From positions 1,302,001-1,366,000 of the forward strand of contig JBLDXI010000001.1 in the NCBI GenBank assembly GCA_047495785.1: a stretch of DNA of 64,000 bases, in the 5' to 3' direction. Positions within the stretch are counted from its first letter, which is position 1, and each line of letters opens with the position of its first letter. Shown piece by piece: positions 19,718 to 56,095 of this stretch. The position numbers were made by a program, and so were the translations under genes. This stretch comes from Lepidodermella squamata. Lineage: Eukaryota; Animalia; Gastrotricha. The notes beneath the pieces were generated by a model. It was not told the DNA's origin and made no database searches. It worked only from the letters and a program-made list of their open reading frames with translations.

Positions 19718-20726
19718 TCAGTGATCTTTGAATTCCAACCCACTATCTGCCATTTTCTCTCGAACAAAATCGTCGACTCGCTTTTCCAAGTCTTGCGTGA
19801 AGTAGTTTTTCCATCCTCCGACAACTCCTTAATTGGTGGGATTAATTGAAGCATTAATTGGTGGGATTCATCTCACCTTTTCTAATGAAAGACTCCGACG
19901 AGTGCCAAACGTGATTGTCCGCGTTGAAAATTCCATTGTAATTTTTCTTCATAGCCTCAAAACTCGTGGCTTCGTAAATTTTCGCAAAAGTCTCGTCCGG
20001 TAAGTCATCTTTTCCGATGAATCTCGCAATTTTCCGTATCGCAGCCATTCGATCGTGTTTCATCTCCTCGTAAGAAATCAGCAATAGATTGTTCTCGTCA
20101 GATATTTTAGCTTGGGCGAAGCTTAGCAGGTTCTTTTCCCACGGTCCCCATTGAAACTTGCCTTGAAGGAACATGTCGACAAACTGCTCGAATGTCCCTT
20201 TATAACCTTGAACGATCATGGCTCGGGCATGATGGAAGTTCGAAACAATCACATCTTTGACATTTCGATACACGTGGATCACTTTCCCGGTCAATATATT
20301 TTCTGGCAGTAAACCAAGCGGCATGTGTGTCTTGAAGATCCGAGGCGATTCCATAGCCGACAGGCTCTCTAATTTTTCCGGTTTTTCATGCCGCGGCCGA
20401 GGAATCTCGAACCACTCGAAGTGCGGGATACGATCGTCAAGGTAAACTGAAGTATCAAAATTCTGCGTTAATAGGTACCAAACGATATATTCTGCCCACG
20501 TTGTGCCTGATTTCGGGAAGCTCGAGATCCAAACGTCGCTCGGCCTGCACTCGAAAGACCGCATGCGATCGATTGATGCAGCCATTGAGGGTAGCAAGGT
20601 GTAGCCGTCGACTTGAGTGATGGGTAGTCCGAGTTCTTTGTCGACTTTATCCCATTGTTCGCCAAATGCTAGCTTGCGAGCTTGCATGATTTGCTCATCT
20701 GTCCAAAGTGGTTCTAAATTGGTCAT
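19718..20726 (-). CDS. Cytosolic sulfotransferase A
   Basis: FPKSGTTW PSB loop, FKTH, YRNVKDVIVS, RKG/GVVGGWK split by one short intron. Confidence 0.92.
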
Positions 20727-21457
20727 TTTTCGAAGAATATATCTAAGTGGCAAAAATAAATCGAGATGGTCTCGTATAATAAAGAGATCCTATTTTGAAT
20801 AAAATTCGGAAATTCTGCACCGCGGAACCCGAATGATTCTACGCAGACTGATTTTATGTTCCCTAAATTCGAATGAATTTCTTTTGAATTTTTGAAATCA
20901 CGCTAATATATCATATAGGATTTGTGAGAAAGTTCAAGTTTAAAGCAAATATGTTCAAAAATTAGTCCGTAAAAAAGAGGTCAAAGTACAGAAGCGTGAA
21001 AAACCTAAATCTGTTACGTTCTAATGAGCATCCAAAAATTGAATACGTGCTCCAAGAGACAAGCAAGAGAGCGATGAACTTCGTTCGAGCTCACCTTATG
21101 GTTTTTTTGTGTTATACTTTTCCACAGACACAATTTGTTAATTGCCGAGACAATGTTATTCACACAGGTGAAAAAGCCGAGGCGTGGTTAATCGAAATTG
21201 CTGAGCAATTCAATTTCGAGGTTTCAATTCGACTTGAAATTTGAGCCTTTTTATTTTTTATTTTAGTGTTCAATCTTTCATACATATAACCTTTAGAGCT
21301 GTCACACATAAAATATACTTATGTGTGACAAAATTTTATAGGTTATTTTGTCATAAATAAATATGAATGAGGAACACCTCGTTATCGCCAGAATCTATCT
21401 ATTAGTGACTTGACAAGGTAGATTTTGAAGTATTGAGATAAAAACAATTGGCTTCAA

Positions 21458-21529
21458 AGGCCCAGGCGGGAATTGAACCCGCGATCTTCTGTTTACGAGA
21501 CAGACGCTCTACCACTAAGCTACTGAGCC
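21458..21529 (-). tRNA. trnT: tRNA-Thr(CGT)
   Basis: Cloverleaf GGCTCAG...CTGGGCCT, anticodon arm TCTGT-CTCGTAA-ACAGA, GGTTCAATTC B-box, downstream T-run. Confidence 0.93.
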
Positions 21530-21927
21530 AAGACGTCGAAAATCGCGGCCGTTTCACCAACATGGATACTTCATATCATGGAAACAAAAGAAAACGGCAG
21601 CGTGTCCCACACAAATACATACCGCTTTTGCTTATCCGCGCAATCAGAGTCAGTAATTGTAGTTATCTTCCTTTGTTCTCTGAATTTATTTTCGTGGAGA
21701 GTGAAAATAATCCAATTAACTAGAATTAACCCCAAACACGATAAAGATCAGGCCCGCAAATTATAATCAGTTAAAATCGGAAGATGCTGTACTTTGCTCT
21801 CGGAAATTATAATGAAAATGTCCATATTCAGCCAAGTCAAGAAAAAATCGTCGAAAATCGTCAAGTCAAAAATATAGTCGTCATAGTAAACATTTTTTCG
21901 CATTAAATCACCTCGAATCAAAGGGGC

Positions 21928-22939
21928 TCAGTGATCGTTAAATTCCAGCCCGCTATCAGCCATTTTTTCCAGAACAAAATCGTCAACACGCTTTTCCAGG
22001 TCTGGCGAGAAGTAGTTTTTCCAGCCACCAACAACTCCTAATAAAATTACCCAGCATAATTGAGCATTTATTGGTGGAATTCATCTCACCTTTTCTAATG
22101 AAAGACTCCGATGGGTGCCATACGTGATTTTCCGGGTTGAAAAGTCCATTGTAATTTTTTTTCATAGCTTCAAAGCTGGTGGCTTCAAAAATTTTCGCGA
22201 AAATCTCTTCCGGTAAGTCATCCTTTCCGATGAATTTCGCAATTTTACGTATCGCAGCCATTCGATCCTTTTTCATCTCCTCGTAAGAAATTAGCAATAG
22301 ATTGTTCTCGCCAGATTGTTTAGCCTGTGCAAAGCTTAGCAGGTTCTTTTCCCACGGTCCCCATTGAAACTTGCCTCGAATGAACATGTCGACAAACTGC
22401 TCGAATGTCCCCTGATAGCCCTGAACAATCATCGCCCTAGCATGGTGAAAATTCGATACAATCAAGTCTTTCAAATTGCGATAAACGTGTATGACTTTGC
22501 CGGTGAAAACATCCGCCGGAAGCAAATTAACTGGCATGTGCGTTTTAAACATTCTGGGCGGCTCATTAGCTGCCAGACTCGCCAACTCCCTCCGAGGGCC
22601 GAAATCAGGCCTGGGAAACTCATAACACTCGAAATGTGGAATGCGATCATCAATCGACGCTGTTGTTTCGAAATCCTGCGTTAGCAGATACCAAACGATA
22701 TATTCCGTCCAAGTTGTGCCCGATTTAGGGAAGCTGGATATCCACACATCGCTCGATCTGCATTCGAATGGCCTTATTCGATCTAATACTGCGTCTATTG
22801 GTCGCATGAGGGTGAAGCCTTCGGCCTCAAATATCGGTAGTCCTAGCTCTGGGTCGATTTTATCCAATAGGTCGCCCATGGCCATATTTCGAAATCCCGT
22901 TACTTGCTCTTGTGTCCAAAGTTGTTTTAAATCGCTCAT
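21928..22939 (-). CDS. Cytosolic sulfotransferase B
   Basis: Same motifs and intron position as sulfotransferase A. Confidence 0.92.
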
Positions 22940-24456
22940 TTTCGATCAATGGATGCACCAGTAAATGAAGTAAGTAGGTACGGTCAAGTTAAAAAATTGA
23001 AATGAGGTGTGGAAAGAAATGCTGAATGCTGACAATCTTTAAAGCTGCTTAATTATAAAGCTTTCAGAAAATTACGACTAGCCTGTATGTATATTTCACG
23101 GTGAAACGCTGTCAGGCTCATATGTTTCTATCGGCAATATTGAAAAAGTGTGTTTTTTACAGCAAGCAAACAAACTATGGAGGAATCGTCTATTCCTAAA
23201 CACTAAGAAGTATTCCTCATATCCATGAAAAAACGCAATAACCACCTCAGGCTTTCTAATATTATTAACGTTACTTGGTTAAGCGCAAGACACGTGATAA
23301 TTTGAAACCCCAGGTCACGGTTTTGGCGACAACAATAGATAGGGCTTGATCATGTGAATATTCAAGGGAAGGTAGAGAAGCTCAATCAAAGAAAAATGGC
23401 CGTTAATTACACTCCTAGTTTCGGACATTTTTCAAAAACTGTCTGCTCGCGCTTTTGGGGAAACCGCAATTTGAACAACATACATGCATACCTACATACC
23501 GACAAATTTTAATTTCGGGTAAACTTTCGATTTTCTAAATGCATTGCATTGGAAACTTTGCTGCTAAAAAAACACCATTAACGCGCCGGAACCATCGTAT
23601 AATTTTCGTATTTTCAACAAAAACATCGGAAAATTCAACGTTTTACTTCATCTCAGTTTCCGATGGGTTAAGATATTATTTCAAATTTTCACAAATTCAC
23701 TTTATATTATTTCAGATGTTCGATGAAATGAGACACACGTTATATTGCACTTATTCATAAATTATCGGCCGAGCCCTGGAAGATGACCCGCGCCACGGCC
23801 GCGAGTAACCACGGTTCTTCACAAAGCCTAAGCTCCCGACCTCGACCGTCACCTTGGCCTCGTTTCATATCAAGCCGGGCGCAGTGGTGCATCTTCAACA
23901 TTTTTACATCGTAATTGTGTATCTAATTTTTCCCGAGATGGAGAAGCTTCTTTATTTGTTTTGCTTCTTGTATCTTTTGCACCGTGCTCACGGCTCACGG
24001 CTCACGGCACCATACTCCGTCCGCTTTCTGCGTGAAGAATTGAAGCTGAAAGTTTTTAAGAGCATTCAAATTTCTAAGCGATCGCTTTAATTTCACGCGG
24101 GAACCCTATATACAGGGTGGCCAAAAATCCGCAATGTTCGGTTTTTCAACATATTTCCTCCTCCATGTCCAATACACATACCTACACCACGTTTGCATAA
24201 TATCCGCGCGATCAGTCAGTAATTAAGCTATTTTCCTTTTTTCTCGGAATGTATTGCCGTGGAAAGTAAAAATAGTCCAAATAAAAACAAAACATGGAAA
24301 ATATCAGGCTCGCAAATTAGAATAAGATGCTGTACTTAGCTCTCAGAAATTGTAATGGAAATTTCCATTTTCAGCCAAGTCAAGAAAAAATAGTAAAAAA
24401 ATGTCGTGGTCACAGTTAACATTTTTTCGCATTAAATCACCTCGAATCAAAAGGGT

Positions 24457-25482
24457 TCAACAGTCGTTGAATTCCAGCCCGCTATCTGCCATTTTCTCTC
24501 CAGCAAATTCGTCGACCCGCTTTTCCAAGTCTGGTGAGAAGTAGTTTTTCCAGTCTCCGACAACTCCTAATGAAATTTGCATAACATATTGCTTAATGAA
24601 TTAAAAATTGTAAACTCAAGCGATAATCCGACCTTTTCTTAAGAATGACTCCGATGGATGCCAAACAACGCCTTTCGAGCTGAATGTTCCATTGTAGTCT
24701 TTCTTCAAAGCCTCAAAACTCGTGGCTTCGTAAATTTTAGCAAAAATCTCGTCCGATAAGTCATCCTTTCCGATGAATTTTGCAATTTTACGAATCGCAG
24801 CCATTCGATCTTGCTTCATCTCCTCGTAACAAATCAGCAATAGATTGTTCTCGCCAGATTGTTTAGCCCGAACAAAGCTTAGCAGGTTTTTATCCCAGGG
24901 TGCCCATTGAAACTTGCCTCGAAGGAACATATCGACAAACTGCTCAAATTTCCCCTGATAGCCCTGCACAATATTCGCCCTGGCGGCATGAAAATTCGAA
25001 ACAATAACGTCTTTCAAATTGCGATACACGTGGATGACTTTGCCGGTGAAAACATCCCTGGGAAGTAAGTTAACTGGCATGTGGGTTTTGAACATTCTAG
25101 GCGGATCTTTTTTAACCAGACTTGCCAAATCCCTCTTCGAGCCGAAATCAGGCCTGGGAAATTCATAGAACTCGAAATGCGGTATGCGATCATCAACCGA
25201 CGTTGCTGCTTCGAAATCCTGGGTTAGCAGATACCAAACGATATATTCCGTCCAAGTTATCCCCGATTTAGGAAAGCCTGATATCCACACATCGCTCGAT
25301 CTGCATTTGAATGACCTTATTCGATCTAACACTGCGTCCATTGGTCGTATGAGGGTGAAGCCTTCGGCCTCGAATATCGGTAGCCCCAGCTCTGGGTCGA
25401 TTTCATCCAATATATCTCCCATGTTCAAATTTCGAAATACAGTTACTTGCTCTTGTGTCCAAAGCTGCTTCAAATCGCTCAT
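24457..25482 (-). CDS. Cytosolic sulfotransferase C
   Basis: Paralog of B; PSB loop variant GFPKSGITW. Confidence 0.9.
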
Positions 25483-26673
25483 TTTTGAATTGATACGCGC
25501 TAAAATAAGTTATGCAGGGTCAAATTATAAAATTAAAATGAGGTATGGAAAAAGATGTTACAGTTGTTTATTTATAAAGCTTAGAGATAAAAGCGGTTAG
25601 CATCAATGTATATTTTACCCTGGCTAACACGGTGAAGCGTTGCCAGGCTCACATCGTTGACTTGGCTATAGGGAAAAATTGGGGTTTTTTTTACAGCAGG
25701 CAATAAACAAACCACGGAGGAATAGGCTATTCCTACTTACATTCCTCCATGAAAAAAAGCGCAATAACCACCCCAGGCTTAAAGTGCGTGGTTAAGCGCA
25801 GGTGATAAATTGAAGCAATTAACATTATGACACGATCAGAGATCGCCCGCTAGCGTGAAAAAGGGTGTACGCCGTGGGCGCCAGATAGTCAGCTGATTCA
25901 TCAGCGGCTTGGAGGCCAAGTACACAAAATAATCGATTCTTTGTTTGAGGGTTCCGAATTCCGAAAAAATTGATGGTTCCAGATAGGTGACATCACATCG
26001 AACACGCTGGTTATTTTACAAAATTTTAGAAGCAATATGAACCACTGAAATTAAAGGAATTGAATTTCGTTGATGCAATAAAAATTCATTTACACCACTT
26101 GTGGAATCGAAATTGAAGCAGTTTTTTAGTGGCCCGCGTACCCCAGACCGAGCTCTACAATTTGATACTTGGAGCGAGCTGGGATGAATTTTTATCGAAT
26201 TTCAGGAAATTTTTGAACATCGAACGTGATTTCATCCATTATAAAAGAATATGAACTTAGTGGATGATTCAATTCAGAACCTTTGTTGACAGCACGTGCG
26301 CGGCATGCACATGTTGTGGTTGGAAACCAAACCCGAATCTCAAGAGAACTGTTGTCTATAGTCTATATGTGTAACAGATAGGACAAAACGGACATAAAAT
26401 TTGAAATCATCTCAAAATTTAAATAATAATCGTAGTAAATCTTAACTGCATGTAGCGTAAAACCGCATAAAATTAAGAGCTGAACAAAAATATGGCCGGA
26501 CCGGCCGAGATGTGGAACCGGAATGTTGAGCGACAGCAATAGGTTGAGCGGCATGAGGCATGAACACATGAAAAGTAATAATGTTGGGCCTTCTGTTCAT
26601 TTTAACACGGATAAAAACCACAAAATGCGAAGGAATAGAAAAATGAGGAAGGAGCAAAAAATCATTCATCGGA

Positions 26674-26745
26674 AGGCCCAGGCGGGAATTGAACCCGCGA
26701 TCTTCTGTTTACGAGACAGACGCTCTACCACTAAGCTACTGAGCC
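26674..26745 (-). tRNA. trnT: tRNA-Thr(CGT)
   Basis: Identical to the copy at 21458-21529. Confidence 0.93.
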
Positions 26746-27110
26746 AAGACGTCGACAATCGCGGCCGTTTCACCAACATGGATACTTCATTTCCTGAAAA
26801 CAAAAGAAAACGGCAGCGTGTCCCACACAAATACATACCGCTTTTGCATATCCGCGCGATCAGAGCCAGTAATTTTAGTTATCTTTCTTTCATTCTTTGT
26901 TCTTTGTTCTTTGTTCTTTGTTTCTTTGTTCCCGGAATTTATTGCCGTGGAAAAAGAAAATAATCCAATTAACTAGAATTAACCCCAAACACGATAAGGA
27001 TCAGGCTCGCTAATTAGAAAAAGTTAAATTATTATTCCAATTCAAGATGAATAGTAGAAAATTTCGTGGTTACAGTTAACAACGATTGCCTCGCATTAAG
27101 TCACCTCGAA

Positions 27111-28136
27111 TCAAAAGGGCTCAGCAGTCGTTAAATTCCAGCCCGCTGCCATTTTCTCTCGAGCAAAATCGTCGACTCGCTTTTCCAAGTCTGGCGTGAA
27201 GTAATTTTTCCAGTCTCCGACAACTCCTAACAAAATTTACATAATGTGTAATAGGTGCAGATTGCACATTCAAGAGATATTCCGACCTTTTCTAATGAAA
27301 GACTCTGATGGATGCCAAATAAAGTTTTTCGAGCTGAATGTTCCATTGTAGTCTTTCTTCATAGCCTCAAAACTCGTGGCTTCGTAAATTTTAGCAAAAA
27401 TCTCGTCCGATAAGTCATCCTTTCCGATGAATGTTGCGATTTTTCGTATCGCGGCCATTCGATCCTGTTTCATCTCCTCGTAACAAATCAGCAACAGGTT
27501 GCTCTCGCCAGATTGTTTAGCCTGTACAAAGCTGAGCAGGTTTTTATCCCAGGGTGCCCATTGAAACTTGCCTCGAAGAAACATGTCAACAAATTGCTCG
27601 AATGTCCCTTGATATCCCTGAACAATCGTCGCCCTAGCATGGTGAAAATTCGATACAATCAAGTCTTTTAAATTGCGATACACGTGGATGACTTTGCCGG
27701 TGAAAACATCCCTGGGAAGTAAGCTAACTGGCATGTGCGTTTTGAACATTCGAGGCGGCTCTCTAGCTGCCAGACTTGCCAAATCCCTCTTCGAGCCGAA
27801 ATCAGGCCTGGGAAACTCATAACACTCGAAATGCGGTATGCGATCATCAATGGAAGCCGTTGTTTCGAAATCCTGGGTTAGCAGATACCATACGATATAT
27901 TCCGTCCAAGTGGTGCCCGATTTAGGGAAGCTGGATATCCACACATCGCTCGATCTGCATTCGAATGACTTTATTCGATCCAATACTGCGTCTATTGGGC
28001 GTATGAGGGTGAAGCCTTCGGCCTCAAATATTGGTAGTCCTAGCTCTGGGTCGATCTTATCCAATAGGTCGCCCATGGCCATATTTCGAAATCCCGTTAA
28101 TTCCTCTTGCGTCCAAAGCTGCTTTAAATCGCTCAT
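27111..28136 (-). CDS. Cytosolic sulfotransferase D (4-nt deletion alters the last residues)
   Basis: All core motifs present; exon 2 has gcagcggg where paralog C has gcagatagcggg. Confidence 0.88.
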
Positions 28137-34249: not shown

Positions 34250-36184
34250 ACGCGAAAATAATAATTAAAATAATAATTAAAAAAAGACAAAAAAATAATT
34301 ATACGAAGCCAAAATTTCAACCTCAAATTCTTGTGTAATTTTCTCTGTCTCAAAGATGCTGATATGACACATGCTTGCCTTAAAAAAAATACATGTCCCA
34401 CTTCATGTCGATATTATATATCGTGCTTTTTTGTTCGCGAATCGCCCGATCCTTATTTTATCTCTCGCTTTAATTGCGTGACTTGAGGTTTATCATCATC
34501 ATCGAAAATTCAAAAAGCGTTGTCCTTACAGTCGCTATAGGTTGAACAACGATAATAATACATTCGAACGAATAGTAATAAACGGCGCCGAAAATTACGA
34601 ACAACAACTATGTCGGCGGCGTAAAATTTTTATCAATTGAGCATATCACATGTTATTCGTGTGAGAACCGGTGAGTGCTCCTTCTCTCTTCTTACTCACT
34701 GTTTCTGTCTTAACCACCTCTATATTAATACATTATTTTATTGTAAAAAATAAGTATACCTATTAATCAAGTTACTAACCTTGAATCATGATATAGATGT
34801 TGTAGTAGTCATCAAGTTTTGGGTCGCTTTTTTCTATCCGCCTTTCGCCCTCTCATGTGCGCTTCGTTTAGTTACCCGCCGCCGATGATTTTTTTGGTTC
34901 TCATGCTTGGAAAGGCGCTGAAACGGCTCGGCGCCTTTCACTCGTCATCGCCTTGCGCTGTCTGGATGATAAACGCACAACGCTCTGTTTGTTGATGATA
35001 TCTGCTGTTATTGTATTAACACGCATTATAAAAATTATATCATTATTACATGTTCACTGTTTTACTTTGATAATATATCATCATGATTCGACTTATTTAT
35101 TATCGCTATACACTATTCTACATGTGTAAAAACTACAATTCAATGTCCAAAGGCGAAAATGATCAATCACTTTTATATATAGAGGAAATTGGTTACAATG
35201 AAAAAAAAACTTTCGTGTTGAATACCGGGGTCGTTTTTTTCCAAGTTTCCAAAAGTGACCAATCAAACCTTGAGCTTGCGTCAGACAACGAGTAATCGGA
35301 TTCCAGAGTTTTTCCGATAAAATTAATTAATTTCAAAGATAGAATTTCAGACATCAGCTAATCAGCTAAGGCATTTAAATTGGCGAATGTGGATGTGGAA
35401 AATGACAGGAACATCCCAGGACATTCGGACAATAATTTGGTGGAATAATTCCAACTTTAAAGCGAAAGAAAAAGAAAAAGCATTTTTAGCTGAGTTGTCG
35501 AAAGGTCAAATTCCTGGTAAAATGAAAACAGATATTTTCCAAATTACACGAAAATTTCCAATATTATCATTATCATTATCAAAATAGATTTATTTTCTAC
35601 CAATTTTATGCAGGCGTCCCAGATTTATTTTCTTGAGCATTTCCTGGCATTTCCTCTCTGTTGGATGACCATGCCATGTCAGCGAGGTGATCGATCGGCT
35701 ATCATCGAATAATAGGTCACATGGGTAATTTTGATTCGCAACCTTAACTATTAACATTTCAAGTAAAAAAAGATAGAAAAGAAACAGAGAGAAGAGGTTA
35801 CATTGTACTATTAAATTTCAGCTAAATATTTGTTTTAGTTGAAAAAAAAGATTAGGAAAATGGCAAGGTGAAAAAAGGTGCGACGCCGAGTTTTTCCAAG
35901 ATTTCCCAACAATTTTCCAGAGCTTGTCTACTTTCCACATTCTGCTAAATATTTGGAGTTGAACGATTTGTTATTCCATTGAGATTTTCATAATTGACCT
36001 TGTGGACGCTCGACGCCGCGTGCCCGTTATTCGATTATCGGGCACGTGCTGGTAAAATCAAAATAACATCTATTTTAAAACGGGCTGGAAAATAATAAAC
36101 AGGTCGAAAGCGAGCTCGCGATTTCAATCGTGTTAGGACACGTGGAGCGGCGTTGCACAACACGGAAAATCCGTCGGCCGGTGG

Positions 36185-36194
36185 TATATTTAAG
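36185..36194 (+). promoter_or_regulatory. TATA-like box upstream of gene A (conserved at 43260-43269)
   Basis: ggtggTATATTTAAg about 90 nt upstream of the ATG in both copies. Confidence 0.55.
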
Positions 36195-36275
36195 GGCATA
36201 CCGAAGACTGGTTAAACATCAACCAGCCTCTTCTCATATTTTCTCATCAGTTTATTCTCTCATTTCAATCAAAAA

Positions 36276-36921
36276 ATGCGTCTTGTTTTGGTTGCAGCTG
36301 TCGTTGCTCTTTTCTGCATCGGTGAGCAGGAGAATCAATATCAATTCATCTAGTTTCAACTTTGATTTTTTTTCAGCCGCCACCTCAGCGAACATCGGCA
36401 AACGCGGTCGGGGCAACAATGTCTCCGCCTCGGTGAACAAGAAGTCGGCCTCCGCCTCAGCTGGTGATAACCGTGGTCGTCGTGGATTCATCGGCCACCG
36501 TGGTCGCCGCGGCAACTTCGCCTCTGCCTCGGTCAACCGCCGCTCCGCTTCGGCTTCAGCCGGCAACAACCGCGGCCGTCGTGGCCACTTCATCGGCCGC
36601 CGTCGCGGTGGCAACTACGCCTCGGCCTCTGTCAACAAGAACTCCGCCTCCGCCTCAGCTGGTGACAACCGTGGCCGCCGTGGCCATTTCATCGGCCGCC
36701 GTGGCTCCCGCTCGTCCGCGTCTGGCTCCTTCCGCGGCCGTCGCCATGGACGCGGTTTCTATGGCCGCCGTCACGGTGGTCGCTTCGGTCGTCACGGTCG
36801 CCGTGGATTCTACGGCCGTGGTCACTATGGTTACGGTCGCCGTCATGGCCGCGGTTTCTTCAGCGGCTCGTACTCGTCCGGCGACTTCCATGGCCGTCGT
36901 CACCATGCTTTCTGGAATTAA
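36276..36921 (+). CDS. Secreted Arg/Gly/His-rich repetitive protein A, copy 1
   Basis: Exon 1 36276-36321 encodes signal peptide MRLVLVAAVVALFCI; 55-nt intron; exon 2 has 3 SASVN..SASASAG.NRGRRG.FIG repeats and a G/R/H/F/Y tail; strong codon bias. Confidence 0.88.
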
Positions 36922-37052
36922 AAGCCACCTCAAGAACTTGTATCAAATTGCGATAAAGATTATTTATTCATCGAAATTTGATGAAAAAGAAATGCAAATT
37001 ATTCTTCAATTATTCTTTAATAATTATAGATTTTGTTTCGATTTGATTGAAG

Positions 37053-38151
37053 ATGCGAGGATTCTTGGTTCTCTCTGTCATTGCTTTGGGCTGCATCGGT
37101 AGGATTTCCCAAACTTTTCAATAGCGAAATTATTGCCTTTGTTTCAGCCCTGACCTCTGCCACTTTTGACCATGGCAAGAAAGCCGGTCCCAAGGGTGGT
37201 CGCCGTGCCGGTTACTCCGCCTCGGTCGAGAAACGCGACACGTACGATCGCAAGTCCGCGTCTGCTGAGCAAGAATCCGGTGCCATCAACTACGCCTCGG
37301 CCGATGCCTCGCACAACAAGAAGACCAGCGACAAGCGCAAGTTGATCAAAACCCGATCGGCGAGCCGCGAACGCGCCTCCGCCTCCTACGCCTCAGCTGG
37401 CAAGCGCGACTCTGCCTACGACCGCAAGAAGTCCAAGGCCGGCAGCAAGCGCCGCAACCGCGTCATCCGCAAGAGCGACTCGGCTGCCTTCGCCAAGCAC
37501 GACAACGCCTACGCTGGAGATGGCGCCGCCGCCGCTGCCGAGAAGCACAAGCGCAACAAGAAGCACGGCCGTGCTGACCACAAGCGCAAGGCTGCCCTGC
37601 ACAAGGACCAGGCCCGCGACAAGGCCGGCGAGGTGATCGAGTTCAAGAAGAAGACCTTCACCGACAAGGGCACGAACAAGGTCGACAAGTTCAGCTTCGA
37701 ATCGGGCGCCAATGACTTTGCTGCCTTCGACTCTGACGGCGCTGCCACGACTGCCAGCCGCAAGAAGACCGCCAAGAAGGCCCATGGCAAGAAGTCCCGC
37801 AAGGCCCACTCTGCCGACTACGCTTCCCGCGACTCGAGCGCCTCGGCTGCCGCTGCCTCGAAGAAGGCGAAGCGCAACAAGGCCCACCACCGCCGCGCCT
37901 CGACCTCGGTCGCTCGTGACTCGCGCAACGCCCGCGACTACAAGGCTGGCCAGAAGAAGACCTTCGAATCTGACTCGGCCCACACCCGCAAGGCCGCGGC
38001 CAAGAAGTCGCACAAGCGTGCCTCCGCCTCGGCTGAACGCGCCACCCACGACTTCCACGGATCTTTCTCTGTCAGCGCCCGCGACAACTACGGCAAGAAG
38101 GGTGGCAAGAAGGGTGGAAAGAAGGGCGGCAAGCACGGCTACTACTATTGA
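37053..38151 (+). CDS. Secreted Lys/Ala/Ser/Arg-rich protein B, copy 1
   Basis: Exon 1 37053-37098 encodes signal peptide MRGFLVLSVIALGCI; 49-nt intron; ends KKGGKKGGKKGGKHGYYY; AATAAA near 38222. Confidence 0.88.
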
Positions 38152-38574
38152 GTGAATTCAATTAACTACCGTATTGAACCCATGTTATTCCGTTGATGTT
38201 TTTCGGAGGTTTATTTTTGAAAATAAAGACATGCGCTTTGAGCTGAAATTGAGGTTAAAAGTCATTCGTAATTTTCTGCTAAAGGGTTCTGTTAAAGGGT
38301 TGGACAAAAACGTCTATTCCCGTGTTTTTGGAAGTCTCCAATTCCCTACTAAAATTGCCGTTTTTTCTGAATAGCTGTTTTTTTCCAAATTCCCAGAGAA
38401 ACCTGTAAATACGAGTTCATTTTCATACGAGTAAAGTTCATTTTCAACCAGAGCCGGAAAACATGCCAAACACGCGCGACTGGCACGCAGGAAATCTTTG
38501 GATTTTTAGGAAATTTTTCCTTCAGGAATAGTTGAAATTGTACATGGTTAATGGCAATTTTATCTGGGAAAAAG

Positions 38575-39700
38575 GAAAAATCAAGCTTTGCGATCTCAGC
38601 CAGAAAAGCCGTGCGTTTTGGTTGTCGATGGCCACTCGTCCCATTTCTCCCTCGCCGAATTGGACTACTGTCGCGACAATCAAATTCACATGCTGGTGCT
38701 GCCTCCTCATTGTAAGCACAAATGGCAGAGTTCATTTTTCTCGATTTTCTATGAAATTCCGAAAATTCGAAAAAAAATCCAAGAAAGTCCAATCTAAATT
38801 TGCGATTTTTTTTCAAATTTGTCGGTTTTTTCAGATCGCGTAGTATTTGGACCGTTCAAAACAGCTTGGTAGAAGAAGGCCGGACTTTGGCAATCGAAGA
38901 ACCCGGGAAAGCCGATCAATCGTGAGACGTTCGCGCTAATATTTACGCCGGCTTGGGCTGATATCATCACCTTGAGCGCTGACAATCTGGCTGAAATCGG
39001 CTTTAAAGCCTGCGGCATTTTGCCTTACAGCCCGCTTCGGCTTTTCCAAAATGCCAAGGAGGACCAGTTCGCGATCTCAGATGCGATAATCGCGGCCAGG
39101 AATCGACAGACCGCTCTCCCGATACCGGAAATCACGATTCAGACCACGAATGCACCTGCGTTACTGCCGCTTCGACCAATCGTCCCTTATAGCAACACCT
39201 GTGCCGCTCTCAATTTAACAGCGAAGCCTCAACCGAGCCTTGCAGAAGCTGCAGAAAGTATCATGACTAATCCGTTTCAGCGACTGTCGAATAATCGAGG
39301 CGCGCGTCGCGGGCGTGCTGCTCAGCGTGCTCGAGTCGCGACCTCAGATGAGGATTACGGCGTCGTCGCGCTGAGGGGCTCTCGTCGAAGAAGACAAGCT
39401 GAAGAACCGTGGCACTCGAGGCCGCGGTGGCAGAGGTGGTCGAGGTCGCGGTGGAACGCGTGGCAGCAAGCGCCGAGCCAGCCCGAGCTCATCGTCTTCA
39501 TCATCTTCATCCGATAGCGATTCTGATCTCGACAGCGAATAATTTTGTATTTCTACATCGCGCTGCATTTTGGCAATCGCGCTGAGTCATCCATCTAGCA
39601 CTCATGCAAAAATTGTGAGCGAAGCGCGCGAATTAAAGGAATTATAATAACTTTAATCAAAAGTGGTCAGATTCTGTCCCAAATTGTACGACTTTACCCT
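38575..39700 (+). mobile_element. Degenerate pogo/Tigger-like DDE transposase fragment
   Basis: VLVVDGHSSH, MLVLPPH, DRVVFGPFKTAW* (internal stop), GFKACGILPY; possible terminal repeat near 39675-39700. Confidence 0.8.
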
Positions 39701-39849
39701 ATTAATAAAATTGTGAATAAAAATTACTCTGAGCATCACTGTGCTATATTACTTATATTATAATATACCTAGTAGTAGTTTTTGTTAAAACAATGATCCG
39801 ACTGATACTAAGTAACAGTTTGCCTATAGACGCGGGTATTTACATTTAA

Positions 39850-40170
39850 CTAATTCTTTCTGTACAAATGATTATTTATGATTTTGCATGAGTCTTTTAT
39901 CGTTGAGATAAATATGATATGAGTGACTGCGGTAGTTCGAGACGTTTTGCGAAGTCGCGGAAGAACTTGGTGATGGTACCACGGGCTCCAACGAAGAGAC
40001 CGATTACTTCGAGGGAAGTTAGATTGTATCTTTCCTTGAAGTATTCTGCGCAAGGCTCGTAGTGTGCCCGTTTTTCTTTGTCGACTTCCAGGGCTTGATC
40101 TGGGCTTTTTTCGAAGCGGATGGTAGGGTCCAAGATCCACCCTTCTCTCGTGTTTTTATTGAAGGCGATA
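39850..40170 (-). mobile_element. 3' fragment of a non-LTR retrotransposon with a restriction-like endonuclease
   Basis: ILDPTIRFE...VDKEKRAHYEPC...VIGLFVGARG resembles the RLE domain of R2/NeSL/Utopia-type elements. Confidence 0.6.
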
Positions 40171-40610
40171 TAATATCATAATATAATACGATTATAATAT
40201 AATATAATAATATAATACGATATTATTATAACGATATTTCTGATGCGCCCAAAACCCATTACGTGGCCGTGCTTTTATTTTCGTTTTGAAATAATAAAAC
40301 CAACAGCTCTCTAATTACTAGCTCAGATTTTCCATGAGATTTTCGGGTTTTGCGAAGTTCAATGCGGGCTTTTTCGCCGTAATATTATCGTATTTTGTCA
40401 TTTCAAACTAGCAATTCATTTATTATTCCAATTAAACAGAAAGAACTGCTGAACGTTTCAGTATTCAATCGAATTTTTCAATATATTTTCCTGAATATCC
40501 TTTATTAAAATATGTTGATTGCCTTTAAAAAATATTTAATAAACACTAATGGAGCAAAAATGTGTTCAAGCATGCGTCCCTATCACGTGATCAATATTTT
40601 CTGATATGAG

Positions 40611-40759
40611 AGCCGAGGCGTAGTTGCCACCGCGACGGCGGCCGATGAAGTGGCCACGACGGCCGCGGTTGTTGCCGGCAGAAGCCGAAGCGGAGCGGCG
40701 GTTGACCGAGGCAGAGGCGAAGTTGCCGCGGCGACCATGGTGGCCGATGAATCCACGAC
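40611..40759 (-). pseudogene. Inverted internal fragment of gene A
   Basis: Reverse complement encodes RGFIGHHGRRGNFASASVNRRSASASAGNNRGRRGHFIGRRRGGNYASA; no signal exon. Confidence 0.9.
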
Positions 40760-40777
40760 AAATTTGACAAACTACTA

Positions 40778-41176
40778 ATGTACTCGAGTACGCGGCAAGC
40801 TTTCTGGTCACTTAAAAATATCCAAACGCTAGCTATGATTAGAACTAATTCCATTCATAAACCGTTTTGCTATATAAATAACTTCGGTCTTAGATGTATT
40901 TTCTGCTATAAAAATAGTAAAAATCCCGCCCTATCTCTAAATAGCTTCGCTGACTCAGTAGAACTTTTAACTCACCTATACCTAGAATGCAACTACTTGC
41001 CGTATCTACATAATATGAATAACGCTGAAATGCAACCTGATAAAACTGACATAATTAATTCTATAATTTACTGTGAATCTAGCGGCTCTGCACATGTATC
41101 GAAACTACTACCCCTCGCCTACAATTACCGGATGACTCTAAAATTGCATATATATCCGCCTATTCCATCTACCTAA
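40778..41176 (+). mobile_element. Possible LINE ORF2 C-terminal zinc-knuckle remnant
   Basis: CIFC...THLYLEC CCHC-like spacing next to an RT fragment. Confidence 0.4.
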
Positions 41177-41225
41177 CCTTGACTAATCTTGACTAACTAT
41201 ATCGGCAATCGGCAAGACTACATAT

Positions 41226-41795
41226 TCACCGAAGGTCAAGCCAGGGAAAACTAAGGAAAGGTATGAGATCGTTTATAAAAATCGAAAACAAAAGTGGTGA
41301 TAATGGGTCACCCTGTCGGACTCGCACGTTTGACTTTATTGGCTTATCGAATAGAATAGTCGATTTCATTCTAAGAAGCAATGTATTGTCGGCATACATG
41401 TTCCTAATGACCTCAATGAAGGACAAAGGCAGTCCTATTTTTCTGAGCTTCTTCATTAAGAGAGCACGGCTAATTTTGTCGAACGCGTTTGAAAAATCTA
41501 CGAAGGCTGTGTATATTTTCTTTTTCCTAGTAAGGTAAAAAGCCACGATGGCGTAGAATAGAGTACACGCATCTACTGTGCCTATTTTTGGCGTGAATCC
41601 GAACTGTTCGGGTCGCAGTATCTTTTTAGCCGTGAACCATTCTAGCAAGCGTTTCTCTCGGATACTTGAAAATATTTTGGCAAATTTACAGACAGAAGTG
41701 AGATAGCTCTATAATTTTTAGGATCTAATCGGCTGTTTTTCTCATAAATAGGGATCAGCAATGCTTTGCGCCAACATTCTGGGTATTTGCTGGGT
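41226..41795 (-). mobile_element. Non-LTR retrotransposon reverse transcriptase fragment
   Basis: PEQFGF, AFVDFSNAFD, VRQGDPLSPLLFSIFINDL; truncated before YADD. Confidence 0.88.
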
Positions 41796-43350
41796 ATGAG
41801 CTAGTAATTATTTGCTGAACTGTTTCCGAGATCTGCGAGATTGAACTACCATCATCAATAAATTATTTTTTTATCGCTCGTGTTGGAAGCTAGGCATATC
41901 ACACGACCCAGCTCAACCATAACCCTCACGTGCACCGTTTTTATAAAATCGAGCTAGCACGTTAAAATGATGAAACTTTGCACAGACATAGGAATTTGAT
42001 CCCCCTCATGCCCTGAAATGGCCAAATTAGTATAATTTTTCCCGATTTCCGCTGCAACTGAAAACCATGTTTTTATGGAAAATAACAGCTTTTACGGTAA
42101 AAAATGCAGATGAAAAAGTCTCAATTTTCACCGAGCGCACGATAAATCAATGCTGACGCGCTAGATGACCAAGTAAAAAAGGGGCATTATCATAGAATTG
42201 TCAAAGTTGTACTAGCTTGTCAAAATTGTACTCCCTTGCGACTCCCTTTGAACCAGGTGCACGATTTTACATTGAATTTCGTCATCTAACATCAATTATC
42301 AAATTTACACATATAATTTTAACTACAACCTCAATAACAACCTCATAACAACAATTCACTCATTTCAAGGGCGATCATGAACCGTTGCCCCCATTGCAAG
42401 CAAAATTTCATAAAGCTTGGGTTGGGGTCTAACAACGTTATTGTAAACAGTAGCATTCCAAGACTGGAACAGCGACCATCGAAAGTACTGATCTGTCCCC
42501 AAAATCAAAATTGATAGACGACTTAAAAAAGCGAATTCAAGATCTCGAATGTCGTCCTGAGCCTTAGGAACCCTGTTTCAGCCCAGTCGAGTAAAGAGCT
42601 TCGCGAGGTTTCACGTCTTCATCTCCGGATCTCCAGGATCTGTCGAATCAGCCGAATCAGCGCTTCCGATGCAGCCATTCCTTGATACAGGGTTGGATCA
42701 AAAATTGGACTAAGTTGCGTGTTATAATAATATGGCCGGCCGACACAATATGAAAAAAGGGGGTAATTCCTCCTGAGCCACTAAGGTGCTGGAAAGTCAT
42801 CACCCGAATCGCCCAGGAGAAATGCGCATTTGACTAATCATATTTTTCTGTTCGCTGAAAACATTCTGATTCTTCGAAATGATAATCTTGAATAAATTTG
42901 AAGGTGACAATTTTTGCTAGACGAAAATAAGGTTATGGCAGATATGAGAAAGGTAGAGCCGAGTTTCAAGCCTATGCAACAGTTACACATATAATTTCGC
43001 GGCTTGATTTCCAAGAATTTTGCACGGCAAGCCTACTTATTTCCACATCCCATTTATGATGACCTAAAATTGAGAGTCGAATGATTTTTTTCATTGAGAT
43101 TGACCTTGTGGAAGTTGCACGTTCTCTCGGGCACGTGTCGATAATTAAAATAACGGTGGAAAACGGACTGAAAAATAGTAAACAGGTCGAAAGCGGCTCG
43201 CGATTTGATTTGACACGAGCAGCGGCGTTGCACAACACCGATATCCTGTTAACCGGTGGTATATTTAAAGGCATACCGAAGACTGGTTAAACATCAATCA
43301 GCTTCTTCTCATATTTTCTCATCAGTTTATTCTCTCATTCCAATCCAAAA

Positions 43351-43997
43351 ATGCGTCTTGTTTTGGTTGCAGCTGTCGTTGCTCTTTTCTGCATCGGTGA
43401 GCAGGAGAAACAACAATCTCAATTTATCTAGCTTCGATTTCGATTTTTTCAGCCGCCACCTCGGCGAACATCGGCAAACGGGGCCGCGGCAACAATGTCT
43501 CCGCCTCGGTGAACAAGAAATCGGCCTCCGCCTCAGCTGGTGACAACCGTGGTCGTCGTGGATTCATCGGCCACCGTGGTCGCCGCGGCAATTTCGCCTC
43601 TGCCTCGGTCAACCGCCGCTCCGCCTCGGCCTCAGCCGGCAACAACCGTGGTCGTCGTGGCCACTTCATCGGTCGCCGTCGCGGTGGCAACTACGCCTCG
43701 GCCTCTGTCAACAAAAACTCCGCCTCCGCCTCAGCTGGTGACAACCGTGGCCGCCGTGGCCATTTCATCGGCCGCCGTGGCTCCCGCTCGTCCGCGTCTG
43801 GCTCCTTCCGCGGCCGTCGCCATGGACGCGGTTTCTATGGCCGCCGTCACGGTGGTCGCTTCGGTCGCCACGGTCGCCGTGGATTCTACGGCCGTGGTCA
43901 CTATGGTTACGGTCGCCGTCATGGCCGCGGATTCTTCAGCGGCTCATACTCGTCCGGCGACTTCCATGGCCGTCGTCACCATGCTTTCTGGAATTAA
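43351..43997 (+). CDS. Secreted Arg/Gly/His-rich repetitive protein A, copy 2
   Basis: Same two-exon structure; protein appears identical to copy 1, with synonymous differences. Confidence 0.88.
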
Positions 43998-44125
43998 AAG
44001 CCACCTCAAGAACTCGTATCAAATTGCCATATAGATTATTTATTCATCGAAATTTGATGAAAACGAAATGCAAATTATTCTTCAATTTTTCTTTAATTTT
44101 AGATTTTGTTTCGATTTGATTGAAG

Positions 44126-45224
44126 ATGCGAGGTTTCTTGGTTCTCTCTGTCATTGCTTTGGGCTGCATCGGTAGGATTGCCCAAACTTTTCAATAGCGA
44201 AATTATGACTTTTGTTTCAGCCCTGACCTCGGCTACTTTTGACCATGGCAAGAAAGCCGGTCCCAAGGGTGGTCGCCGGGCCGGTTTCTCCGCCTCGGTC
44301 GAGCACCGCGACACGTACGATCGCAAGTCCGCGTCTGCTGAGCAAGAATCCGGTGCCGTCAACTACGCCTCGGCCGATGCCTCGCACAACAAGAAGACGA
44401 GCGACAAGCGTAAGCTGATCAAGACCCGATCGGCCAGCCGCGAACGCGCCTCGGCCTCCTACGCCTCGGCTGGCAAGCGCGACTCCGCCTACGACCGCAA
44501 GAAGTCCAAGGCCGGCAGCAAGCGCCGCAACCGCGTCATCCGCAAGAGCGACTCGGCTGCCTTCGCCAAGCACGACAACGCCTACGCTGGAGATGGCGCC
44601 GCCGCCGCTGCCGAGAAGCACAAGCGCAACAAGAAGCACGGCCGTGCTGACCACAAGCGCAAGGCTGCCCTGCACAAGGACCAGGCCCGCGACAAGGCCG
44701 GCGAGGTGATCGAGTTCAAGAAGAAGACCTTCACCGACAAGGGCACGAACAAGGTCGACAAGTTCAGCTTCGAATCGGGCGCCAATGACTTTGCTGCCTT
44801 CGACTCTGACGGCGCTGCCACGACTGCCAGCCGCAAGAAGACCGCCAAGAAGGCCCATGGCAAGAAGTCCCGCAAGGCCCACTCTGCCGACTACGCTTCC
44901 CGCGACTCGAGCGCCTCGGCTGCCGCTGCCTCGAAGAAGGCGAAGCGCAACAAGGCCCACCACCGCCGCGCCTCGACCTCCGTCGCCCGTGACTCGCGCA
45001 ACGCCCGCGACTACAAGGCTGGCCAAAAGAAGACCTTCGAATCTGACTCGGCTCACACCCGCAAGGCCGCGGCCAAGAAGTCGCACAAGCGCGCCTCCGC
45101 CTCGGCTGAACGCGCCACCCACGACTTCCACGGATCTTTCTCGGCCAGCGCCCGCGACAACTACGGCAAGAAGGGTGGCAAGAAGGCCAGCAAGAAGGGC
45201 GGCAAGCACGGCTATTACTACTGA
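44126..45224 (+). CDS. Secreted Lys/Ala/Ser/Arg-rich protein B, copy 2
   Basis: Same two-exon structure; a few substitutions (for example KKASKKGGKHGYYY at the end). Confidence 0.88.
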
Positions 45225-46395
45225 GTGAATTCAATTAAATTCCGTATTGAATCAATGACATTTCGTTGATAAAGATTGATATTTTCTGCGCTATTCTTAA
45301 ATGATTTATTTTCGAAAATAAAGACGTTCGTTGTGAACTTGACTTTTGTTTTTTGAAAATAATTTCTACTTCAGCGTACATTATCGTGACTATTAAAAGA
45401 ATCGCGCGGTGGAATTGATTATTTGAATTTTTTGCACATATGCGCTCGTTCGTGGTGGCGCTTCATTTTCGTTCCTAAACGGACCAGAATTATGAACATT
45501 TCCCGGGCTCAAAAATCATGATTAAAAATAGCTCGGCTGAAAGCAGGATAGTTTGAGGTTTGAGGTGTCTCGAAACTAGGAAATTCTTATACAAAATCAG
45601 AAAAAAAAATAAAAAAATCGAAACTATTTGTTTCAAAATGTTTTTCTTTTAACTCTGCTCGTCCTCATCGCATTTGAATTGTAAATAGCAATGAGAATGA
45701 ATATTAATGAATGAATATTAATATTTGATAAGCTAATTAAACTTCCAAATCTGTCCCAGTTTCTATTTTGGTGTTATTTGAACCCAAGCTTTGAGCTAAA
45801 ATTAGCCAGCTAAATGCGCTCGCGAACATTCGAATCCTCCTATCGGCCCAATCAAACAAAGGAGATTAAAAAGGAAGAAAATCAGCCATTGAATGTTATA
45901 ATCTGACTATTGTTCGCAAAGTTACAGATTTCATGCGAACAACTTTGCGAACAAGAGCAAAAATTTTTATTCGAGTTATATCATTTGTCGTAGGTAGAAT
46001 CAAAAATTTCTTGGTAAACCGGGTGATACGCTACGTTATATCCTACCATCATTGTAAATTACAGTTGATGAAATGATAACATTAAGGTGGAGTTTTTATT
46101 TTGTTATTAGAGTGTTTTGTTTTCGTCAGCAAAACGTGCGAAGCGAGATTCTCAACACGCTCGCTTTTTTCTTGTGAGACACCCTGTTCACCCACGCGCA
46201 GTTATTCATTGAAAGTTTGGATTGCGTGGTTCGGGTCAAAACGGCGAATTGTCTGTTCCATTCAGACACGCCTATTCAAGATCGCTGCGCCAAGCAACGG
46301 AATGTTTTCGTACAAAGGTGTCTATCATTAAAATGTCAGTAAAATAAAATAAAGCAGACGACGAAACTCATGACCTGAGATATTTGGCGGAAAAT

Positions 46396-52350: not shown

Positions 52351-53366
52351 ATGGCCAGTGCAGAGGAGGAAGACTTGAGTAACGAGACGCCGGCCGAGCT
52401 TCGTCGCCGGCAATTCGGCATTTTTGCCGACTACATCGACGTTGAAAACGGCTGGAGCACCCCGACAATCACATGGGCCGGCTACACTGTTCGAACTTCA
52501 CTGCCATTATACCTCGAAAGCGTTCGGCTATTCCCAGTTGATGAGAAGGACGTTTTCATCGCAAGTTTCCCGAAATCTGGCACTACCCTTATGCAACACG
52601 TTGTTTGGCTATTGCTAACCGGCGATTTCGAAACTAGGGAGCAGATCGATCACAGGGTGCCTGAGCTCGATTTACCCACCCCGTACCCGGTTCGGCCGGA
52701 AAATCTTGAAATCCACGCGGCCAAATCCCCACCTCGAATTTTTAAAACCCACCTAGCCTTCAAATTTCTACCTATCGATGTGTTGAAGGGCAAGGTGATT
52801 TACATGTATCGAAATCCGAAAGATGTCGTAGTTTCCTACTACCACCACGCTCGTGCGATAAAGACAATAGCGTATCGTAAGAGTTTCGAACATTTTGTCA
52901 AGATTTTTCTAAATGGCAAGGTTAATTTCGGCCCTTGGACGCAACATGTTATCGATTATTCTGAAGCGGCGAAGAAAAGTGATAGAATTTTGCTAATAGC
53001 CTATGAGGACTTTGTCAATGATAGGGCGGCTGTTATTCGAAAAGTCGCAGATTTTCTCGGGAGAAATGACATTAGCGCTGATATTTTTAAACGAATTGTT
53101 GACGAGACAAGTTTAGAGGCGATGAGGGCAAATGACGGTGTTAATTATGACTGGGTTCGTAAAATGGGCTATCGCGATCCTAACGAGACGGCTTTTATTA
53201 GAAAAGGTATGAATACTGATCTTAAAAACTAGAGCGCACCTAATTTTTCCTTCTAGGCGTTGTCGGTGACTGGAATAATTATTTTTCACCCGAGCTGCGG
53301 GAAAGTTTCGATACTCACATCAAGGAAGCTATGTCAGGATGCAATATTTCATTTAATGAAGGATGA
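52351..53366 (+). CDS. Cytosolic sulfotransferase E (more divergent paralog)
   Basis: SFPKSGTT, FKTH, YRNPKDVVVSYYHH, RKG/GVVGDW with the same intron position as A-D. Confidence 0.92.
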
Positions 53367-55159: not shown

Positions 55160-56095
55160 TTATTTTTTGCCGTTGATGGCGACGGGCGCGATAGGGACAG
55201 GCTGGGTCGGGGCGCCGTACGTGGTCGAGAGGACGTCGCAGGTAACGCGGCACTCCTGTTCAGTCTTGAAGCCCTGGTTGAGGCCGCCGAAGTTGCCCCA
55301 CTGGCTCTGGCAGTAGGTCTGCTTCGTGCACGACTTGGTCGGCACGTTCCAGCCCCAGCCTTCGACCTGGGTGCCCTGGCAGCCGAACATGTTCATCGCC
55401 GACCAGCTGTTCGATAGAATGCACGAAACCGGCAGGGATGGCGTGGTTGTAGTCGGGGTGGTCACCTCAGGCACGGGGGTTGTGACGACCTCAGGCTGCT
55501 GTTGCTGCTGTTGGGGGAAGAAAAGGTTCTGCTGGCCGCCCCATGGTTGCAAGAACTGGAACGGGGAGAACTGTTGCGGCTGCTGCTGCTGGGGTTGGAG
55601 TTGGAGTTGCTGTTGCTGTTGCGGCTGGCTTTGGGCTGGGACGACGTAGACCTGCTGCGGCTGGGTCTGGGCAACAGGTTGCTGCTGAACTGGCTGAACC
55701 AGCTGAGGCTGAACGACGACGGGCTGAGTCTGGGCGGGCTGCTGCTGCTGGGCTGGCTGCTGTTGCTGAGCGGGTTGCATCTGGCCCCATGGGTTGTTGT
55801 TGAAGTTGTTTCCGAAGAAGTTGTTGTTCGTATTCACGGCCGGGACGACGTTAGAGTTGCTGCCGAGGAGACCATTCACGAACTGAGAAACCATATCCGA
55901 GGCTGGGGAAAAATAATCAAATTTTTATTATAAGGAGGATTTATCGTAAATCGTTTTCTCACAAGGAATGCTGAGACCAGACTGCTGATTTTGCTGCTGC
56001 TGCGGTTGCTGCTGTTGTTGCTGTTGCTGTTGAACCTGGGCCGAAACAGCGGCTAGGCACATGGTGCCGATGAGAAGGGCCGATCGAAGAGTCAT
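55160..56095 (-). CDS. Secreted Gln/Pro-rich protein with a divergent Kunitz-like domain (K2)
   Basis: Signal MTLRSALLIGTMCLAAVSAQ; Q/P/N-rich body; six Cys with WGWN....C and NQGFKTEQECRVTC. Confidence 0.8.

Follow-up and report, generated by a model that had tools for sequence, protein, structure and literature searches.

A family of paired genes for putatively secreted polycationic proteins in the gastrotrich Lepidodermella squamata

Two A-B gene pairs and their products

We analysed a stretch of 64,000 nucleotides (nt) from the gastrotrich Lepidodermella squamata (C1:1302001-1366000; hereafter the window), of which the GC content is ~38-57% per 2 kb. Sequence reading and translation of spliced models identified four intact two-exon genes on the forward strand, A1, B1, A2 and B2, encoding two kinds of strongly basic, low-complexity proteins, A and B. 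The best explanation for these genes is that their products, A and B, are unrelated to each other, restricted to this lineage and produced in large amounts for export. Exon 1 of A1 (36276-36321; 46 nt) encodes the signal peptide MRLVLVAAVVALFCI plus one nt and is followed by the donor GTGAGC. After a 55-nt intron ending in TTTTCAG, exon 2 (36377-36921) continues in an intact frame through the mature protein and the stop codon, and A1 amounts to 196 amino acids (aa) in all. B1 is organised likewise, with exon 1 (37053-37098; 46 nt) encoding the signal peptide MRGFLVLSVIALGCI plus one nt and exon 2 (37148-38151) the mature protein including the stop, for a total of 349 aa. The second pair comprises A2 (43351-43997; exons at 43351-43396 and 43453-43997), whose protein is identical to that of A1, and B2 (44126-45224; exons at 44126-44171 and 44221-45224), whose protein differs from that of B1 at 6 aa.

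In all four genes, exon 1 is 46 nt long and terminates in TGCATCG directly before the GT of the intron, and the introns are only 49-56 nt long, with TTTCAG at the 3' end. The leader encoded by exon 1 is hydrophobic in each case. Exon 2 completes an Ala codon and then reads (A/L)TSA, a good -3/-1 cleavage motif, so that cleavage of the signal peptide is placed after TSA by the -3/-1 rule. The products of the A and B genes are probably secreted.

Each pair is embedded in a duplicated block of 2.1 kb. Copy 1 (36077-38197, +), which carries the promoter, A1, the gap, B1 and the start of the 3' end, was aligned by blastn with copy 2 (43160-45270, +) over 2125 nt at 95.2% identity. Putative promoter boxes of A1 (36115-36223) include CTCGCGAT (36115-36122), CACGTG (36139-36144), the basic leucine zipper (bZIP)-like TTGCACAAC (36153-36161), TATATTTAAG (36185-36194) and an initiator (Inr)-like ATCAAC (36218-36223). 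The 131-nt gap between A1 and B1 (36922-37052) contains no TATA box, bZIP-like box or AATAAA/ATTAAA, and an acceptor-like TTATAG in it ends at 37029. The 128-nt gap between A2 and B2 (43998-44125) also lacks a polyadenylation (poly(A)) signal and has an acceptor-like AATTTTAG ending at 44102. Use of either acceptor-like AG would leave a 23-nt leader before the B start codon. AATAAA occurs at 38222-38227, 70 nt past the stop codon of B1, and at 45317-45322, 92 nt past that of B2.

Mature A (176 aa, 19.1 kDa) has an isoelectric point (pI) of 12.0 and a net charge of +39; Gly (22%), Arg (21.5%) and Ser (13.6%) are abundant, and four residue types account for 67% of its length. Mature B (329 aa, 35.7 kDa; pI 10.45, net charge +52) is instead rich in Ala (19%), Lys (17%), Ser (12%) and Asp (8%). 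Both are very hydrophilic, with a grand average of hydropathy (GRAVY) of ~-1.3, and contain little Tyr (3.4% in A and 3.6% in B). The only Cys is confined to the leader, leaving the mature parts Cys-free. Tandem Repeats Finder detected in A1 (36412-36704) 2.9 copies of a 99-nt (33-aa) unit, which encodes the module GN(F/Y)ASASVN(K/R)xSASASAG(D/N)N and an Arg/Gly/His/Phe spacer; the same unit emerged from an alignment of 11 paralogues of the short A form described below. The only tandem repeat of B is the GKKG array near its end (38092-38133 in B1; 12-nt unit), after which HGYYY follows. The words SASA/ASAS occur 11 times in A and five times in B, and (SA)3 runs are present. S-x-E sites were found only in B (five versus none in A) and conserved furin-like R-x-[KR]-R sites only in A (five versus none in B). 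In AlphaFold2 models built with family alignments, A showed no secondary structure (predicted local distance difference test, pLDDT, 42) and B formed long helices of low confidence (pLDDT 44), which fits disordered mature proteins with no compact fold.

The predicted A protein is a block copolymer, in which near-invariant, neutral Ser/Ala modules alternate with Arg/Gly/His/Phe/Tyr spacers before an aromatic-rich Arg/Gly tail. Predicted B has variable Gly/Lys/Tyr ends, which flank a conserved Lys/Ala/Ser/Arg/Asp core of ~280 residues. A preliminary description of this DNA, made from the letters of the window, had proposed a duplicated two-component set of cationic, Cys-free proteins with 46-nt signal exons ending in TGCATCG before GT, a Ser-Ala/Arg-Gly-aromatic block design in A, a KKGG-type repeat and HGYYY end in B, and strong codon bias. 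The gene models, reading frames and splice sites proved to be as described there, the signal exons recur in all four genes, and the charges, repeats and alignments given above agree with it, as does the codon usage.

The A and B genes are supported as real genes under constraint. Over the 591 coding bases, A1 and A2 show 16 differences, every one of them synonymous; with about a quarter of the sites being synonymous, the chance of this in the absence of selection is <1e-7 by a rough estimate. B1 and B2 differ at 29 bases, resulting in the 6 aa changes (nonsynonymous divergence, dN, 0.010; synonymous divergence, dS, 0.094). Across the family, the 22 B genes compared had a median dN/dS of 0.35 and the 12 short A genes one of 0.26, and no pair exceeded 0.52. 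The true constraint is probably stronger than these ratios show, because codon bias depresses dS. The effective number of codons (ENC) is 30-38 in A and B, as against 53-61 in eight neighbouring genes; two further neighbours are lower (50.5, and 40.0 for orf55160). The bias is also seen in individual codons: AAG accounts for 93% of Lys codons in A/B versus 29% in the neighbours, CGC and CGT together for 97% versus 26% of Arg codons, and GCC for 68% versus 30% of Ala codons. Such extreme codon bias, together with the size of the family, can be taken as signs of high output. Two open reading frames (ORFs) antisense to B (37393-38136, -, 247 aa; 44217-45209, -, 330 aa) are rich in Ala/Gly/Leu/Val and were rejected as genes; they look like by-products of a codon-biased sense strand rich in G and C at third codon positions.

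The family and its A-then-B order

Six-frame searches of the whole assembly (121.2 Mb in 151 contigs) with A and B yielded 36 matches of the B type and 59 match segments of the A type, which lie for the most part on contig C3 between 2.47 and 3.62 Mb. We built two-exon models for 25 A-type and 26 B-type genes, and the family thus comprises at least 51 genes. The locus in the window is an outpost of this much larger family, which resides mostly on another contig; the pair closest to the locus pair, at C3:3258019, has an identical A signal exon and a similar promoter. Short forms of A, as at the locus, have three modules and an Arg/Gly/His/Phe/Tyr tail ending in W(F/Y)W(H/N), and long forms have 5 to ~10 modules. 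Across the A genes the neutral module GN(F/Y)ASASVNK(K/R/N)SASA(S/A)AGN is near-invariant, whereas the cationic spacers are variable. The ~280-residue core of B could be aligned almost without gaps over 23 genes, and variation is found in the N-terminal Gly/Lys/Tyr stretch and in the C-terminal (KKGG)n and Tyr-rich end.

The two kinds of genes are tightly linked. In 19 of the 25 A genes, a B gene follows 113-198 nt downstream on the same strand. The partner of a short A was always a B with a 46-nt exon 1 (11 of 11 pairs), and that of a long A always a B with a 49-nt exon 1 (8 of 8). Distances among A genes correlated with those among their B partners (Mantel r 0.71), a value reached in none of 2000 permutations. 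The A-B pair is the unit of duplication. The duplicated pair of the preliminary description holds insofar as two copies are present at the locus, but there is more than one duplicated pair, since the family numbers at least 51 genes and the A-then-B arrangement is found in 19 pairs. The linkage of A and B as a set, in turn, is tighter than had been claimed, as the same order is seen in 19 pairs and the two families vary in concert. The description had also taken the shared signal exon to imply a common origin of A and B, and this was not supported. Profiles of the mature A and B showed no similarity by hhalign (probability 0.4%, E 0.14), and a 49-nt exon 1 is used in half of the B genes (13 of 26). 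Because the mature regions are not detectably related, the signal exon of a single B subfamily is all that speaks for a common origin; exon 1 of A and the 46-nt exon 1 of B are on average 56% and at most 70% identical.

The arrangement of putative regulatory signals follows the pairing. A promoters have a TATA-like box ~80-99 nt before the start codon and an Inr-like ATCA ~30 nt past that box; further upstream lie the bZIP-like TTGC(G/A)CAAC, C(T/A)CGCGAT and often CACGTG. This A1-type layout precedes most of the family's A genes, and unpaired B genes as well. In none of the 19 gaps did a paired B have a TATA or bZIP-like box, whereas among the seven unpaired B genes the majority have A-type boxes. 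AATAAA/ATTAAA is present in only three of the 19 A-B gaps, and in 16 of the 19 pairs it occurs within 200 nt past the B stop codon, usually at 70-130 nt; of the six A genes that no modelled B follows, five have it within 200 nt of their own stop. In 17 of the 19 pairs, the motif WT[TA]AG stands 10-30 nt ahead of the start of B, and the other two have TATAG and CTTAG. As controls, the motif was found in 2 of 25 A genes and gave a value of 0.15 in shuffles. Each A-B pair looks like one transcription unit, because paired B genes are free of promoter boxes, a poly(A) signal is missing after most paired A genes and an acceptor-like TAG precedes each paired B start. At C3:2915922-2917294 (L012), an A-type promoter and 5' leader run directly into the last part of an A-B gap and then into a B gene, as would result from the loss of A out of a former pair. 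We also searched for a spliced-leader RNA gene with the Rfam model SL1, and the three sub-threshold matches on contig C29 were rejected as satellite sequence rather than an RNA gene (C29:3416914-3417795, L045; unit ~31 nt, containing TTCTGTCGCTTGAAGAGAAAATTTGAAA). A literature search found no paper on trans-splicing in gastrotrichs.

Relatives outside this genome were sought with exon 2 sequences or with family profiles made from them. Pfam-A contained no family matching A1, B1, A2 or B2 at E up to 1. No match for A or B was obtained in a word-index search of 5.8 billion clustered proteins, none for a profile of 18 B genes among 1.84 billion representatives, no usable match in the ESM Atlas and no confirmed relative among JGI metagenome contigs searched with A and B profiles; these collections returned not even the animal's own proteins and may hold no gastrotrich data. 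The absence of a recognisable family, already remarked upon in the preliminary description, is borne out by these Pfam, cluster, profile and metagenome searches, which were all empty. A and B are an orphan family within a known general class, notable for the operon-like architecture of their cassettes.

When the whole genome was searched for the composite promoter (TTGCRCAAC and a TATA-like box separated by a gap), the pattern was not specific, with 163 matches versus 223 in the reversed control, but the search led to further genes for putatively secreted polycations inside the C3 cluster. One encodes a Cys-free polycationic protein of 708 aa rich in Lys/Glu/Ser (C3:3471283, L048) and another a Cys-free polycationic protein of 568 aa rich in Lys/Ser that ends in (KG)n...AFYGSYY (C3:3509041, L050). 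Both are predicted to be secreted and are unrelated to A/B; their promoters have the same layout as those of A genes, with the bZIP-like box ~125 nt before the start codon. Several polycationic families in this cluster end in aromatic or Tyr-rich tails. In the midst of the polycation genes lies a gene for a small acidic protein rich in Ser/Glu/Asp (C3:3493684, L051, -; 77 aa, net charge -12), also predicted to be secreted. That it might be a polyanionic partner of A/B is pure speculation.

As for the surroundings in the window, the spacer between the two A-B copies holds broken transposable elements (38588-39540, +, and 41226-41648, -), with fragments of a pogo-type DDE_1 transposase (E 2.6e-5) and of a reverse transcriptase, RVT_1 (E 5.8e-16). 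It also holds a 152-nt inverted A fragment (40608-40759, -), which is 98% identical to 36479-36629 and has neither start codon nor signal exon. The fragment is possibly a recent pseudogene piece among transposon debris, or else a chimeric artefact. The assembly was made from amplified DNA of one animal (PMC11660948), and small inverted pieces need to be read with care for this reason. Two ORFs rich in Gln/Thr/Pro end in a Cys-bearing domain (55160-55894, -, and 61777-62418, +), and the latter has a weak, sub-threshold match to Kunitz/BPTI (E 0.0086; 16.7 bits versus a cut-off of 21). Five intronless ORFs of 288-318 aa, four in tandem (19854-28136, -) and one apart (52351-53232, +), bear PKSGTTW and RKG motifs, by which we take them to be sulfotransferase-like.

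Possible roles of A and B

Our preferred reading, which we hold at about even odds, is that A and B serve as building blocks, made in bulk, of a secreted material. The body cuticle or scales, the egg envelope and an adhesive are the candidate materials, among which the sequence alone does not discriminate. Taken together, the signs of bulk expression, the export signals, the disorder and charge, the block design and the strict pairing favour building blocks over peptides for defence, precursors of signals or protectants in solution.

The high net charges of both proteins might suggest that A, and perhaps B, are antimicrobial polycations, with A being a polyprotein cut at RGRR into many short cationic Gly/Arg/aromatic peptides. 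The RGRR residues at the furin-like sites of A are invariant in nine paralogues, a Gly/Arg/His/aromatic composition is generally known from glycine-rich antimicrobial peptides, and multi-copy genes are common for such peptides. Nevertheless, the best-conserved parts of A are the neutral Ser/Ala modules and not the cationic spacers. B has no furin-like site at all and retains a conserved core of 280 residues, all gene comparisons point to purifying rather than diversifying selection, and a fixed A-then-B pairing is not expected of independent peptides. We consider a role in defence unlikely. The dibasic sites of A could also be read as those of a neuropeptide-like or hormone precursor giving rise to small, possibly amidated signalling peptides, as the repeated F(F/I)G-RRR and RGRR motifs resemble Gly-plus-dibasic sites of amidation and cleavage. 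The peptides released would be only 3-5 residues long, or neutral Ser/Ala nonamers, and neither the many A genes (25 modelled) with 3 to ~10 modules nor the extreme codon bias nor a constant 36-kDa partner fits such a precursor, which makes this reading very improbable. Soluble protectants or coat proteins, for instance similar to late embryogenesis abundant (LEA) proteins of resting eggs or forming a mucus-like layer, would account for the strong hydrophilicity of A and B, the long helices modelled with low confidence in B and its Ala/Lys/Ser/Asp composition, which resembles that of hydrophilic stress proteins as generally known. However, neither LEA nor any other Pfam family was matched, B shows no 11-mer periodicity (the terminal GKKG array being its sole tandem repeat), and blocks with aromatic-rich Arg/Gly segments, as in A, may be more typical of condensing or cohesive proteins. 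We see a protective, non-structural secretion as no better a prospect than defence.

Several observations weigh against A and B being building blocks produced together. The exact octamer ATGCAAAT, which could be an internal promoter element, lies at 36992-36999 and 44068-44075, ~55 nt before the B start codon, and is found in five of the 19 gaps in all (both gaps of the locus and those of three other pairs). It would be expected if B were an independent gene with its own TATA-less promoter in the gap and the pair no more than a compact tandem. On the other hand, the exact octamer is missing from 14 gaps, 16 of the 19 gaps provide no poly(A) signal for A, an acceptor-like TAG is retained in all of them, and unpaired B genes mostly have A-type promoter boxes; we regard independent genes as doubtful, albeit somewhat less so than defence peptides or protectants. 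The five conserved furin-like sites of A are a further difficulty, as A could be cut into peptides rather than used whole. Tyrosinase (PF00264) had no match in the genome, in a search that gave no signal anywhere, and Tyr makes up only ~3.5% of either protein; quinone-type curing, and the Tyr cross-linking suggested in the preliminary description, are left without support. The genome has three haem peroxidase genes, all outside the C3 cluster. No polyanionic partner of A/B was identified. Finally, any secreted product of high abundance, whether structural or not, could show such purifying selection and codon bias.

If A and B are nonetheless building blocks of a secreted material, the following scheme can be proposed. 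The TATA/Inr promoter before A would drive each A-B pair as a single unit, and the B message would be released at the acceptor-like TAG ~16-25 nt ahead of its start codon, with spliced-leader trans-splicing as the presumed mechanism. One cell would then make A and B together at a fixed ratio. After secretion, the polycations may condense through charge and cation-pi contacts, probably with a polyanion, into a solid or gel, made more cohesive perhaps by the Ser/Ala modules and the aromatic residues at the ends. Multiplication of the two-gene cassette would be a plausible route to more output at a fixed A:B ratio in an animal of very few cells. In its most specific form, which we put forward tentatively and think rather less probable than building blocks in general, the scheme has A and B combine in stoichiometric proportion, as its two components, into a self-assembling extracellular material that has not been described from gastrotrichs before. 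Neutral Ser/Ala cohesion modules would be set on cationic, cation-pi 'sticker' spacers and combined with a Lys/Ala-rich partner, all encoded by ~19 bicistronic, trans-spliced A-then-B cassettes. If true, this would be an animal structural material of which the component ratio is set by operon structure and the output is scaled by cassette number.

Our literature search found nothing molecular published on the composition of gastrotrich cuticle, scales, egg envelopes or adhesives. The A/B family and the neighbouring polycationic genes with the same promoter layout offer a concrete list of candidate parts for gastrotrich materials. The repeated cassette is also a clean test case for two ideas, namely that operon-like units fix the ratio of two secreted components and that gene multiplication raises the output from few cells. 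For materials science, A represents a compact, Cys-free design of blocks in which the number of modules varies naturally (3 to ~10).

Comparison with known systems

The cement proteins Pc-1, Pc-2, Pc-4 and Pc-5 of Phragmatopoma californica are, like A and B, secreted, repetitive, polybasic and of low amino-acid diversity, and several co-secreted components of this cement form a solid material (PMC4275877). A and B share with polybasic marine cements a basic and repetitive sequence, limited amino-acid diversity and a signal peptide, the secretion of A and B being predicted. The tubeworm cement relies on DOPA (3,4-dihydroxyphenylalanine), the polyphosphoserine partner Pc-3 and a sulfated polymer (PMC4275877). 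No sequence relationship links A/B to the cement proteins; Arg instead of Lys is dominant in A, and the share of Tyr is only ~3.5%.

The lineage to which trematodes belong has been proposed as sister to gastrotrichs (PMC6468455), and the eggshell precursors p14, p19 and p48 of trematodes are abundant, secreted low-complexity proteins of structural type (PMC3499410), as A and B may be if their abundance and role are as suggested here. Tyr-rich tails, such as those at the end of B and of several neighbouring families, are likewise reminiscent of these precursors. The eggshell precursors are Gly/Tyr-rich, with 11-26% Tyr, and are cross-linked by tyrosinase (PMC3499410), whereas A and B, with 3.4% and 3.6% Tyr, depart from a Gly/Tyr-rich composition and show no homology to them. 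In the pharyngeal cuticle of C. elegans, secreted low-complexity families prone to phase separation build an apical matrix in a small animal (PMC9629831). Predicted secretion, disorder and low complexity are shared by A/B, and the sequences and compositions of those families are unrelated to ours.

In A, short blocks with the invariant ASASV-NKx-SASASAG alternate with variable spacers, 3 to ~10 modules per protein, an arrangement comparable to silk block copolymers. In silks, including cross-beta silk, crystalline blocks rich in Ser/Ala/Gly lie between amorphous spacers. The blocks of A are far shorter than such crystalline domains, its spacers are polycationic, and AlphaFold2 predicts no strands. 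Silk blocks of the caddisfly type, (SX)n, carry alternating phosphorylated Ser. In A and B, (SA)3 runs occur, and S-x-E, a priming site for phosphorylation, is present in B alone; the Ser phosphorylation suggested in the preliminary description is left without support.

The A-B pairs, known from genome sequence, resemble in layout the spliced-leader operons of the nematode type: the two genes are on the same strand with a short gap between them (113-198 nt here), the downstream gene has no promoter boxes, and an acceptor-like site directly precedes its start codon. They differ from nematode-type operons in that the upstream gene, A, usually lacks a canonical AATAAA. Furthermore, typical operons join unrelated housekeeping genes, whereas A-B would be a tissue-type cassette that has been multiplied 19 times.

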